Shown: positions 67,134 through 70,905, counted from the first letter of the stretch. The stretch is DNA of 124,000 nucleotides from Octopus vulgaris (GCA_951406725.2 OX597817.1:117820001-117944000), one strand, 5' to 3'. Notes: generated by a model from the sequence alone, not told the origin. A program made the numbers and translations.

Positions 67134-70100
67134 TCAACGAGGAGTTTGCATATTAAGTTGTGTTTGGAATTTTTCAATAAAGGGATTCTCCTTGTTAATT
67201 CTCTCCTGTGTGGTGATCCCGTCTTTACATTGGTAGAAGGGGAATATATAGAATTTGGGGTTTAAGTCTTTAGCACATGAGTCTAAGTGGTCACTCAGTG
67301 GAATTTGTCGGTATTCCGGGAGGTTTATTTGTTCTTTATGCACCGTTACTCGTTTACGTAACGGGAGACTCGTTTGTCCAACATAATTATGTTGGCAACC
67401 AGCGCATGTGAGAACGTAGATAAGGTTCTCGGAGGAACAGGAGAAGTTAGTCTTGATTTTAAACTTCGTACCTTGTTTGAAGGTAAATTCAGAGCCTTCA
67501 AGTAGAAAGGGGCAGGTACCACAGTTTGAGCGTGCACATTTTTTTACTGTTGGGGGTGGATGTGGTGTGTGAAGTTTGGCATTTGTCAAGAGTTTTTTTA
67601 AAGATTTGTGTTGCCTTTTGCATTTGAGGATTTTGTGTGTATTTATAATGTTTTTCATTTTTGGGTCTGTTGACAGTAGACTGAGGTTTTGTATGATTGT
67701 GGTGTATGCTTCGATATTTTTGGGGTTGTGGGTGGAAATGTATGGAAGTATTTTGAGGTTGTGTGTGGTGTTAGGTTGGGTGGTTTTCAGTGTAGTGTTG
67801 TCTAGTTCTTTGGCGCGTTTTATTCCATACTCTATAAGGGTGGAGGGATATTGACGTTGTAATAGTGTTTTTTTGAGGTCTTGAAGGCGTATTTCTCGTG
67901 TTTTTGGATCCGAGACAATGGTGCATACCCTTTTAGCTAAATTGAAAGGGATATTTGTCTTGGTGTGTTTTGGGTGGCATGAACTAAAGAGGAGGTATTG
68001 TTGTGAGTCTGTAGGTTTGTGGTAGATGTCTGTTATGATTTGGTTCTTAGATGTTTTTATAATTAGGAGATCAAGGAATGGGAGATGATGTTTGCTTAAT
68101 TCCATAGTGAATTGGATGTTGGGATGTATGTTGTTTAGTATGGTTTTGAATTCCAGGAGTTTTCATAAGGTTCTTTCCATATGATGAATCAATCATCTAA
68201 ATACCTTTTCCAGTTTTCCATTAGGTAGGTGTGGAAAACATGTCCAAATTTCTGGCTTGATATTTCATAGAGTGACAGTTCGAAGTAACCCATTATGAGG
68301 TTCGCAAGGACTGGTGCAGCCTTGGTACCCATCGCAATGCCACATTTTTGACGGTAGTGTGTGTCGTCGAAGAGAAAAAAATTGTTTGTCAGAATGAACT
68401 TAAGAGATTCTGTAATAAAAGACTTGTTAATGCGGTCAGGGAATGTCTCTGGGTGTTTTTCTAGCCAGAAGTCAATTGCCTCTATACCATACTCATGTGG
68501 AATGTTGGTGTAGAGGTTGATGACATCAAAGGATACCAGGAGTGCCTCCTCGTTAACTGTTTTCGGGAGGTGTTTGAGCATGTCCAGATCATCCCTAATG
68601 AAACTTTTGATGTGGGTAAGGAAAGGTTTCAAAAGGATGTCTAGGAAGTTACTCAGGCGGTGTGTTTCACAGGAGGTACCAGCCACGATGGGCCTTAGTT
68701 TTAGGTCCTCCGGTGCTTTGATGTTGATGTGGATGTCAGTGGAGAGTTTGCAGGATTCGGTGATGTATTTGTTTTTATGGATTTTAGGAAGGCCATAAAA
68801 AAGGCTGGGCTTGCATTTGAAAATGGTGATATAATCCCTTTCTTTTTCTGTGAGTCCCTGACCGTGTTGGCGTATGAGTGTGGTGAGGTTTCTGATTGTT
68901 TTTTGCTGTTTGTAGTTGTTAATAACCTCATAGAAAATGTTATTGTTAAGCATGGAGAACACTAGGTGTTTATAAAATTCCGTGTCCATAAGGACCACAG
69001 CACTCCCTTTGTCCGCTTCTTTGATGGTGAGGTTTTTATCCAGTTGTATGTCACGTAGGTTTTCCCATTCTTCCTTACTGAAATTGGATTTTACCTTGGT
69101 TTTGCTTGGGGTAAAGGGGAGACTCTGGATGTGTTTACAGAAATCGTCCAGTGTTTTATTTCTCCCTTTTGGTGGTAGGAAGTTGCTTTTATTTCTGATC
69201 AATGAATCGTCCCCATTGTTGATATCTGTCAAAGCTTCTGTTAGGCGAAGTTTTCTGCAGAATTCAGAAACGTCATCCTTGACCTCCGGGGGTTGGGTGT
69301 TCTTGGGGTGGGTGTGAATTTCAAACCTCTTGCTAGGATGTTGATTTGGGTTGGTGTCAGTGTTTTGCTGGAGAGGTTTATAATTTTTGTTTTCTTATTT
69401 TGGGTTTGTGTTAGCGGTGGTGTTTGTATTTTTCCCCTCTGTCTAAAAAATGGTTGTTGAGGTAAGGGGTGTATTCTTTGTAAAAGTTCTGGTTGTATGT
69501 GTAGGAGTGTTTTTGGGTGGGGAGGTTGGAGGGGGTAGGTAGTTGTCGTATTTGTGTTGGTATGGGATGCGATGGTGTAAGGATTTGTGAGAAATGCGAT
69601 GGGTTTGTGGGTGTGTGTCTGGTAGATTGTATGGGGGATGTAGGGGGGTATGTAGTTGTGGTGATTGGGTTCGTGTGGGATGTGAGGGTTTGGAGATCTG
69701 TAGGAGATGTGGTAGGAATGTGGTTGTTGGATGGGTGGACTATAGGGGGTTCGTTGGGTGGGTCTTATATGTATCGGTGTGGGTAGGATGCCTTGTTTGT
69801 TATTAGTGTGAGGGAGGGGAGCCTTGAGGGGGGGATAATTTCTAGTGTATGGGAGGTTCTTGAAGGTTCTAATCGGTGGGGGAGGGGTGTTAGAGTGATT
69901 GGAAAACCAGGTTTTGTGGTGGGTCTTGTTTGAGATGTTTCGGGGGGGAAAAGGTTTTTTATATGGTAGGTGGAGGTTGTGTCCTGTTAGGAGGGGGTTT
70001 GGAGAGTATGTGTATTTGAGGTGCGGTTTGGAATGGTGTTTATGGGGTACAGTGGAAGTCTGTGTTGTGGGTACTTTTATGAATGGGTTTTTGGATTTAT

Positions 70101-70905
70101 GGTTTAATATGAATTGTGTTTCATAGTTGAGGAAGAAATCTTTGTTGTTTTCCCAGCGTTTGAGGGAGGTTCGTTCTTCCTTTTCACATTCATCTTTCCA
70201 TAGTTTAATAACAAGTTCGAGGGGCTGTTCGTTGGTGTGTGAGGTTAGTTCTAGAAGTATCTCATCGTCTATTTTTGTGTATTTTTGTTCGTGGTTTTGT
70301 GCTCTGAGTTTTAGAAGTTCTACTTCGGTTTTCATTTTTTCCAATGTTAGTTTTTCTCTTAGGGAGCGTTGTTTTTCAGGTTCGTCTGGGATGTGTTTGA
70401 TTTGGAATTTTCGGGGTAGTATGATAGGGGAGGAGTTTAACCATTTGTCGTAAATTTCAGCTTTGTTTTGGTTTTTGAGCATGTTCCAGAAGAGAAGTTT
70501 TCTGTTGTGTAGTTTCTTAGTCCAAGTAGTGATGATCTGGTTTTTAATGCGTTGTGCTGGGGTTGAAATGTGTTCCTTCTGTGTGTTGAGTGGTGTCTGA
70601 GGTCTCTTTGGCGTTGAATTGGTAAGTAGAGTTTTCAGTGTAGTGTTGATTTCATTTAGGTTTACATCTATCTTATCCGAAAGTAGAGTTTTCAGTGTAG
70701 TGTTGATTTCGTTTAGGTTTACATCAATTTTATCCGAAAGTTGTTGATGATGCTTGTTGTTTTCTGAGTTGTCCCGGGATTGAAGGAGGAGTTCGTCAAT
70801 TTTTTTGGAGAATGTAAGTAGATGTGTATTGAGTACTTTGAGTTCTTTTAGAATGGTCTTATTGGTGACTGTCTCTGTAAGAGTGCTCTTGTTTTTCGGA
70901 GGCAT
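67134..70905 (-). pseudogene. Single reconstructed ~1257-aa PLE polyprotein (N-terminal extension, RT, Cys motif, GIY-YIG)
   Basis: Frames join if one C is restored in the C-run near 69290 (KFTPTPRTPNPPEVKDDVSEFCRKLRL), TGA at 68189-68191 is read as Cys (TGT in copies 1 and 2), and one A is restored near 68162. 3772+2 nt = 1258 codons. Confidence 0.85.
70624..70737 (-). repeat. 57-bp in-frame tandem duplication in the PLE N-terminal extension
   Basis: SDKIDVNLNEINTTLKTLL occurs twice in the 554-aa ORF. Confidence 0.9.

Follow-up and report, generated by a model that had tools for sequence, protein, structure and literature searches.

A separate ORF1 and a candidate −1 frameshift site in Neptune-like, endonuclease-bearing Penelope-like elements of Octopus vulgaris

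We analysed a 124,000-nucleotide (nt) stretch of Octopus vulgaris DNA (GCA_951406725.2 OX597817.1:117820001-117944000; hereafter, the window), in which an earlier note had described a Penelope-like element (PLE) with an N-terminal extension of about 510 amino acids (aa), resembling an open reading frame 1 (ORF1) or Gag-like module fused to reverse transcriptase (RT) and to an endonuclease (EN) of the GIY-YIG type. The region probably represents the 5′ half of an EN-bearing PLE that is young, Neptune-like and inserted in a (TA)n microsatellite. Its family would probably be a two-gene one, in which ORF1 and an RT/GIY-YIG ORF2 overlapping it in the −1 frame are joined by ribosomal frameshifting, the fused frame being specific to the window copy. 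The extra module ahead of the RT is indeed there: its N-terminus is helical and heptad-like, its helical core is conserved, and its low-complexity tail is basic. Its fusion to the RT and GIY-YIG does not hold for the family: the frame is continuous in this copy alone among 13 sibling copies, and the conserved state is a separate ORF1 with a −1 overlap.

Separate ORF1 and overlapping ORF2 in relatives of the element

In the window copy, which lies on the minus strand, ORF1 starts at 70903–70905. The family's authentic ORF1 stop, TAA at 69411–69413, was located by comparison with the sibling copy L049, whose ORF1 is open for 497 aa to that stop and ends in ...NNHFLDRGEKYKHHR. Shortly before the stop, at 69444–69450, a phase check revealed the heptamer T_TTT_TTA within CAT TTT TTA (His-Phe-Leu in the ORF1 frame), the proposed −1 frameshift site. 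The PLE RT leader IINLSSKTLTPTQINILARGLKFTPTP (69304–69384) lies in the family's ORF2 (−1) frame, as does this motif in the −1 ORF of all relatives. The −1 frame of the window family reads ...PFFRQRGKIQ...KIINLSS... and continues into the leader.

The same arrangement recurs in diverged families of the O. vulgaris genome (45–51% identical), where open frames of 495, 446/437 and 472 codons are found repeatedly. One copy (L032) has an ORF1 frame of 495 codons and an ORF2 of 811 aa in the −1 frame, overlapping by 170 nt; a second (L033) pairs a 446-codon ORF1 with a 784-codon −1 ORF2; and in a third (L050) the ORF1 frame spans 518 codons and the −1 ORF2 is interrupted after 479 codons. The heptamer stands in phase in all five own-genome families (L032, L033, L034, L050 and the window family, represented by L049). 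Across relatives, ORF1 measures ~380–550 aa and its stop lies 30–200 nt past the heptamer, while ORF2 is open from upstream of the heptamer, overlaps ORF1 in the −1 frame and lacks any ATG ahead of the conserved INLS/GLKF motifs. A single RT+EN ORF is not the layout of any intact relative; each has a separate ORF1 and an overlapping −1 ORF2 instead.

Conservation extends well beyond this genome. Using phmmer with residues 1–290 against 1.84 billion representative proteins, we obtained 645 clusters at E<=1e-3 (259 at E<=1e-10), and the best 150 matches were all 88–553 aa long, the size of a stand-alone ORF1. An initial word-index protein search, which has low sensitivity here, returned one homologue. 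Many homologues, among them P0005, P0012, P0015, P0020, P0049, P0061, P0076 and P0086, begin with MPPK, as the window copy does at 70894–70905, so the ORF1 start itself is conserved.

Eight foreign contigs, drawn from marine metagenomes (Tara among them), an NCBI assembly and Logan assemblies, were examined as DNA. All eight carry TTTTTTA/G in X_XXY_YYZ phase, 33–198 nt before the ORF1 stop, which brings the count of U_UUU_UUA/G heptamers in that phase to 13/13 (8 foreign loci and 5 own-genome families). In all eight, ORF2 is in the −1 frame and open from before the heptamer, with its first ATG 42–222 codons into the open frame. These ORF2s read ...INLS...GLKFTPTP..., followed by DKG, YxDD, the CxxC linker and GIY-YIG, to the limits of the contigs; the CX2-5CxxC linker motif is also present in L053, L054, L057 and L058. 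In a ninth foreign context, available as a gene table without DNA, the neighbouring gene carries DUF8422, RVT_1, HTH_animal and GIY-YIG domains.

The ORF1 homologues retain a trace of the heptamer in their protein sequences. An x-F-L/F motif stands near the C-terminus in 72 of 78 full-length homologues, and F[LF] occurs in 68/78 tails (last 45 residues) compared with 31/234 control windows taken from these proteins. Different residues stand before F (H, S, P, R, N, Y, D), yet in 70 of the 72 the residue can be encoded by NNU, even though K, E, Q, M and W account for 23% of ORF1 tails. Taken together, these patterns bear the mark of a constraint that acts on the nucleotides of the heptamer and not on an amino-acid motif.

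The sequences themselves show the gene layout and its conservation, the heptamer with its phase and the way in which the fused frame of the window copy arose; from them we infer that −1 frameshifting occurs in the elements, by the following route. In the window family, ORF1 (~497 aa) comprises the MPPK start, heptad-like helices, a Trp/Arg-bearing core of three long helices and the basic tail, and ORF2 (~780 aa) the RT leader, RT, CX2-5CxxC linker and GIY-YIG, in a −1 frame that overlaps the end of ORF1 and has no early start codon. A minority of ribosomes would slip by −1 on U_UUU_UUA, 10–65 codons ahead of the ORF1 stop, to produce an ORF1–ORF2 fusion, whereas the remaining ribosomes would produce ORF1 protein alone. 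The outcome would be a surplus of ORF1 protein like that of Gag over Gag-Pol.

The alternative that survives best, although we think it unlikely, keeps two genes and dispenses with frameshifting: ORF2 would be translated through termination–reinitiation, or through non-AUG or internal initiation, and the HFL residues would be kept for ORF1 function. There is precedent in LINE-1, a long interspersed nuclear element (LINE) whose ORF2 is translated by unconventional reinitiation, and the failure to detect a stimulatory RNA structure downstream of the heptamer fits ORF2 translation of this kind. Reinitiation and internal initiation leave unexplained, however, an ORF2 that is open from before the heptamer, overlaps ORF1 by 30–200 nt and lacks an ATG ahead of the INLS/GLKF motifs. 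Nor do they account for heptamer nucleotides (UUU-UUA/G after an NNU codon) and a phase that are kept in 13/13 loci while the preceding amino acid varies.

Somewhat less likely again is stuttering in RNA or DNA, whereby a polymerase or reverse transcriptase would slip on the T6/U6 run and leave some transcripts or copies in frame. Six consecutive U residues could plausibly cause slippage, and sibling copies of the element differ most often, by a wide margin, in homopolymer length. Template slippage, however, needs neither the X_XXY_YYZ phase nor an A or G at position 7, both of which are conserved, and the T-run of the heptamer has the same length in 13/13 siblings. Phase and nucleotide-level conservation thus fit ribosomal −1 frameshifting better than they fit initiation, stuttering or the single-polyprotein arrangement considered below.

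Origin of the fused frame in the window copy

The long frame in the window runs from 70911 to 69241 on the minus strand, 556 codons from stop to stop and 554 from the ATG at 70905. To account for it, we aligned the coding part (3771 nt) of 13 sibling copies, the window copy included; a further copy, L005 (G000:C8:27295368-27299156), has a run of N inside the ORF1 tail and was left out of the comparisons. The siblings differ from the column majority by 4–31 substitutions per 3771 nt (99.2–99.9% identity), and among them are 26 indel events, nearly all of them ±1 in C5-7, A5-7 or T7 runs.

Three changes in the window copy create its continuous frame. A 1-nt deletion in the C-run at 69633–69637 is found in the window alone, and a second, in the C-run at 69531–69535, is otherwise present only in L040. 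In addition, the window copy has a Leu codon in place of the stop (PEL*QRIHPL) that limits the ORF2 frame in three siblings (L041, L043 and L049). An 8-mer frame map against L049 places the window protein in the ORF1 frame to ~aa 423, in the +1 frame at ~aa 424–455 and in the −1 (ORF2) frame at ~aa 457–542. Between 69414 and 69636, the open frame of the window has therefore left ORF1, first for the +1 and then for the ORF2 frame, and it bypasses the authentic ORF1 stop. The Pro/His/Thr-rich linker in the earlier note was accurate as to the stretch itself, but ~130 codons of the region are read in frames that the family does not use.

None of the 12 other siblings has a continuous frame from ORF1 to the RT leader. 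The 554-codon frame is an accident of this copy, in which two 1-nt C-run deletions and one lost stop join the ORF1 and ORF2 frames. Further down, the RT body of the window is out of frame with its own leader at the C5 run 69288–69292, and a copy-specific 1-nt deletion in the A-run near 68165–68190 splits the RT body from the downstream piece of ORF2.

The genome-wide picture is the same. When the 2.8-Gb genome was searched with the first 264 residues, no fewer than 146 matches were scored (1345 candidates at first look). In ~30 copies that are 84–100% identical, the frame from the ORF1 ATG is open for 195–556 codons; in ~19 full-length, near-identical copies it is open for 282–556 codons, and only that of the window reaches the RT leader. 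RT matches (11,131 candidates) outnumber the 1345 ORF1 candidates, as 5′ truncation would predict. The earlier note had allowed that other genomic copies might lack the domain, or that the fusion might be unique to this copy: the domain is present throughout the family and beyond it, and the fusion is confined to the window copy among the 13 siblings compared.

We regard it as very improbable that the family encodes one polyprotein, with the ORF1-like module joined in frame to the N-terminus of RT-EN. In its favour, the ATG of the window copy opens a frame that passes through the RT leader; L035, a copy of another family, has a fused frame of 984 codons; and unreliable homopolymer lengths in the assembly would leave the true frames uncertain. 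Against this stand the 0/12 count in the other siblings and the three copy-specific changes that the window fusion requires, as well as the recurrent ORF1s of 495, 446 and 472 codons and the eight foreign loci, where ORF1 terminates at a stop and ORF2 lies in the −1 frame in every case. The best 150 homologues are all at most 553 aa long, and a second word-index search, directed at natural fusions of 517–1645 aa that contain the domain, returned none, its sensitivity here being low.

Least credible of all is that the module is foreign to the element, whether as part of a host gene that was captured, as another element nested within it, or as an ORF that arose by chance in A/C-rich sequence: rotifer PLEs are reported to transduce host sequence (PMC3846280) and open frames arise easily in a low-complexity A/C-rich tail, but the domain occurs in at least 146 scored genome places and 645 protein clusters elsewhere, keeps the same position and the same frame relative to a PLE ORF2 in four families of this genome and in 9 independent foreign contexts (8 with DNA), has a core modelled with a predicted local distance difference test score (pLDDT) of 95, and is carried by elements that are monophyletic on the RT-EN tree.

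Several observations weigh against the proposed two-gene organization with frameshifting. Downstream of the heptamer, minimum free energy folding at 10 loci, a method blind to pseudoknots, revealed no significant or shared stem-loop (z-scores −2.2 to +1.9). Two of the eight foreign loci carry TTTTTTG instead of TTTTTTA, and UUUUUUG is the weaker heptamer. In Pfam, PDB and Foldseek searches, ORF1 showed homology to neither an RNA-binding domain nor a Gag domain. The pLTR (pseudo-long terminal repeat) and 3′ untranslated region (UTR) yielded no hammerhead ribozyme: an Rfam E-value scan of 65500–72500 yielded microsatellite artefacts only, and in a manual search for the ribozyme core the sole CUGAAGA (66781) lacked a GAAA core, minimal dimeric hammerhead ribozymes being able to escape both searches.

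The state of the copies also speaks against it. ORF1 is open to its stop in just 1 of the ~19 full-length copies of the window family, and the C5 run at 69288–69292 that breaks the frame between RT leader and body is common to 10/13 siblings. That run yields an ORF of 753 codons, present in 20 copies or more; the other 3 of the 13 siblings keep the frame at this point, and the indel responsible differs in each. The shared run may be a systematic miscall of homopolymer length or a genuine defect of a master copy. The copies are nearly identical, and nearly all their indels are homopolymer changes of ±1: either the assembly miscalls homopolymers, or the window family is largely defective and mobilized in trans. 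If the homopolymer differences are assembly miscalls, many copies would be intact.

The ORF1 protein and the placement of the lineage

ORF1 begins with two long N-terminal helices in the AlphaFold2 model (aa 12–45 and 51–95). This heptad-like part (aa 12–95; 70621–70872) holds a 57-nt tandem duplication at 70624–70737 (copies 70624–70680 and 70681–70737, 95% identical), the source of the 19-aa repeat. The conserved core follows at aa 105–272 (70090–70593), where alignments and the model predict one short and three long helices (modelled core, aa 105–275) with a conserved P-x-I-x-PRKF loop. The pLDDT is 84.5 for the whole region and 95.3 for the core alone, which has a predicted template modelling score (pTM) of 0.86. 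In a 60-sequence alignment, W128, P164, D213 and W236 are invariant and R135, W140, W155, E175, E244 and S247 nearly so; in a 77-sequence alignment only P164 and D213 remain invariant, with W128 and W236 close to it. The low-complexity tail (aa 273–423 in the ORF1 frame; 69637–70089) is basic and rich in Pro, His, Asn, Thr and Tyr in the window family, whereas across homologues it is rich in N, Q, R and K. Mean isoelectric points of homologues rise from 5.3 in the N-terminal part to 8.7 in the core and 10.6 in the tail.

Profile and structure searches, among the checks that the earlier note had proposed, were run on the ORF1 region and its core and found no relative. Pfam gave no consistent family for the window pieces and 60 homologues, and among the 60 no RRM/Transposase_22, capsid or CCHC zinc-knuckle domain. 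A sequence profile search of the PDB returned only weak coiled-coil matches to the ORF1 N-terminus. Foldseek, run with the 300-aa and core-only models, gave no PDB or BFVD match at E<0.07 (best E 0.3 and 0.86 against PDB and 0.078 against BFVD; TM-scores at most 0.40). The confidently modelled core thus appears to be an all-helical bundle without known relatives. The layout recalls, by analogy only, LINE ORF1p or nucleocapsid-type proteins, and the ORF1 protein may multimerize and coat or chaperone the element RNA for target-primed reverse transcription.

To place the elements, we built an IQ-TREE phylogeny of RT-EN with trimmed labelled references from supplementary file 8 of PMC6515669, including three Neptune references, and with telomerase reverse transcriptase (TERT) as the outgroup. 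The window RT groups with the PLE references against TERT. Eight ORF1-bearing elements, four from the O. vulgaris genome and four from foreign contigs, form one clade (100/98). This clade falls within a 94/96 group that holds the reference Neptunes (98/94) and Coprina-like rows, yet lies outside the three Neptune references. Neptune has been reported as paraphyletic (PMC8557442). Its CX2-5CxxC linker and CCHH motif make the element Neptune-like in a broad sense.

Other affiliations were considered and rejected. (TA)n targeting suggested Nematis, but on the tree Nematis (100/100) is outside a 90/97 group that contains the ORF1-bearing clade. Penelope/Poseidon membership is opposed by the tree, where Penelope/Poseidon/Perere form a clade of their own (95/92) outside the ORF1-bearing group, and by the presence of the linker zinc-finger motif. 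Membership in Athena is opposed by the GIY-YIG domain and by (TA)n insertions across many chromosomes. A link to LINEs was raised in the earlier note, which likened the Trp-rich domain to proteins upstream of LINE ORF2s; the ORF downstream is a PLE RT/GIY-YIG ORF in every context examined, namely 9 foreign contexts and all own-genome families.

One foreign contig carries a gene of another kind: in L053 (marine metagenome contig ERR1726718), a gene with a BIR (IAP-repeat) domain at 1709–2017 adjoins the ORF1-bearing PLE. This BIR gene beside the PLE suggests that the metagenome contigs carrying the family are animal (zooplankton) DNA.

Canonical EN-bearing PLEs are described as having a single ORF (Craig et al. 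2021, PMC8557442; Frangieh et al. 2024, PMC11167929; MGERT, PMC6515669), and a 2026 paper reports multiple ORFs, among its PLE set, in Athena and one Coprina (PMC13159263). The legend to Fig. 1 of PMC8557442 mentions a coiled-coil ORF1 separable by a frameshift with a pseudoknot; the figure includes Terminons/Athena, to which the wording probably refers. Killifish Neptune has a 140-aa, non-overlapping ORF1 that looks unrelated (PMC12602865). According to sequence names in the MGERT supplement, the RT ORF of Hydra Neptune starts at nt 1491 of the consensus and the Neptune1_Nv ORF has 1015 aa (PMC6515669). Deposited Neptune consensus sequences may therefore already hold comparable, undescribed upstream coding sequence, so our confidence in the novelty of the arrangement is only moderate.

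Compared with the Neptune clade (Arkhipova 2006; Craig et al. 2021, PMC8557442), the present elements share a C-terminal GIY-YIG with CCHH, the CX2-5CxxC linker, GxKF and DKG motifs, and the pLTR with tandem and inverted structure. They differ in the 380–550-aa ORF1 with a −1 ORF2, the strict (TA)n target and the lack of a detected hammerhead ribozyme, a feature that canonical PLEs with a C-terminal EN are reported to carry in the pLTR. Nematis has the CX2-5CxxC linker and a (TA)n target preference in common with them (PMC8557442), and is set apart by the RT-EN tree. The EN-minus Athena/Terminon PLEs of bdelloid rotifers also have two ORFs; Athena elements, however, are telomeric, with stretches of telomeric repeats and no endonuclease, whereas the present elements have GIY-YIG and occur genome-wide in (TA)n. 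Pfam contains no family for the Athena ORF1.

A formal parallel comes from outside the PLEs, in the gag-pol cassette of retroviruses and LTR (long terminal repeat) retrotransposons. The HIV-1 gag-pol frameshift site is U UUU UUA. The heptamer and its phase are the same; in both, the structural gene lies upstream and is overlapped in the −1 frame by a polymerase gene without a start of its own; and a ratio of structural to enzymatic protein is implied. Unlike Gag, the ORF1 of the present elements has no capsid or zinc knuckle and no downstream RNA structure was found, and the elements are target-primed, non-LTR-type retrotransposons. LINE-1 ORF1p offers an analogy only, with its N-terminal long helices, conserved middle domain and basic tail; the present ORF1 has no Transposase_22/RRM or structural match, and its downstream gene is a PLE RT, not a LINE ORF2.

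The element at its locus and the wider meaning

Direct-repeat spacing, ORFs and domains delimit a full element unit of 4615 nt at 66367–70981 on the minus strand, comprising 5′ UTR, ORF1, ORF2 (RT, zinc-finger linker and GIY-YIG) and 3′ UTR. The features listed in the earlier note (the 554-codon frame, the 19-aa duplication, the Trp-rich helical domain, the Pro/His/Thr-rich stretch and the RT leader) all lie where it had placed them. The leader, which it put near residue 510, was measured to begin at residue 508 with IINLSS (69367–69384), and GLKFTPTP follows from residue 527 (69304–69327). The ORF1 ATG lies 76 nt downstream of the direct pLTR copy, in agreement with the described position of the ORF.

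ORF2 of the window copy is present in two pieces. The RT body spans 68189–69292, or 68189–69394 as more widely delimited, with DKG at 69005–69013 and YLDD at 68192–68203, and matches RVT_1 in Pfam. The C-terminal piece (67134–68162) encodes the RT thumb, the CX4CX2C linker CARSNCGTC (67512–67538) and GIY-YIG with CCHH (LIYVLTCAGCQHNYVG, 67377–67424, with two Cys between GIY and YIG), and ends at the stop codon 67134–67136. The Pfam match to GIY-YIG has E=8.8e-4 in the window and E=2.7e-6 in the foreign locus L054.

The 3′ UTR occupies 66367–67133, and its final 213 nt are pLTR sequence repeated upstream: a direct pLTR copy (a partial tandem) at 70982–71194 is 97% identical to 66367–66579. An inverted partial copy at 71188–71599 on the plus strand, consisting of the 3′ end of the unit and 43 nt of its 5′ start, stands head-to-head with the pLTR, and its outer end abuts (TA)n. 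Together, the 213-nt direct repeat at 4615-nt spacing and the inverted partial copy, placed head-to-head, give the pLTR pattern of partial tandem or inverted insertion. At 66322–66366 the 3′ end of the element abuts a (TA)n microsatellite, the insertion target, and (TA)n also borders the other outer end of the insertion (71599–71750). All 13 sibling copies have (TA)n at the element end, in 6 of them preceded by a 47-nt ‘tail’ copied from the 5′ start of the unit.

The coding strand of the long frame is poor in G (A 40%, C 33%, T 18%, G 9%), and in the stretch after the core domain A and C reach 38% each with G at 7.5%. The GC skew of the plus strand is up to 0.65 across 69241–70911, and the frame-breaking indels occur in the many C5–C7 runs there. 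Elsewhere in the window, further matches lie at 2404–3534 (−), 16509–18175 (+), 119242–120111 (+) and 98584–99078 (−). Three are 5′-truncated pieces of related PLEs without ORF1 (84–93% and 63% aa identity to the RT/EN of this copy), and one is a distant RT-like match with 27% identity.

Among the classes of eukaryotic retrotransposons, PLEs are the least well understood. It is possible, though we put it a little short of an even chance, that the elements described here represent a large, unrecognized lineage of EN-bearing PLEs, sister to Neptune/Coprina, which combines a Gag-like ORF1 of novel all-helical type with a U_UUU_UUA −1 frameshift into RT-EN, and which is found in the 2.8-Gb genome of O. 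vulgaris and is widespread in eukaryote DNA from marine metagenomes. In that case the single-ORF rule for EN-bearing PLEs would be wrong for a major branch, and ORF1 plus frameshifting would either have been present in ancestral PLEs, as a feature shared with Athena, or have been gained convergently. The elements are relevant to the question of whether Gag-like genes and frameshifting date back to the ancestor of the PLE/telomerase-related lineage.

There are practical consequences as well. Transposable element annotation pipelines built on RT-EN alone overlook the 5′ 1.5 kb of these elements, and in young repeats, where single-base homopolymer differences make or destroy long frames, frame calls need care. 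The heptamer is a candidate for a compact, natural −1 frameshift signal without an obvious stimulatory structure. ORF1 itself, a family of 645 clusters with neither a Pfam entry nor a structural relative, may be a component of a retroelement ribonucleoprotein and offers itself for study as such.

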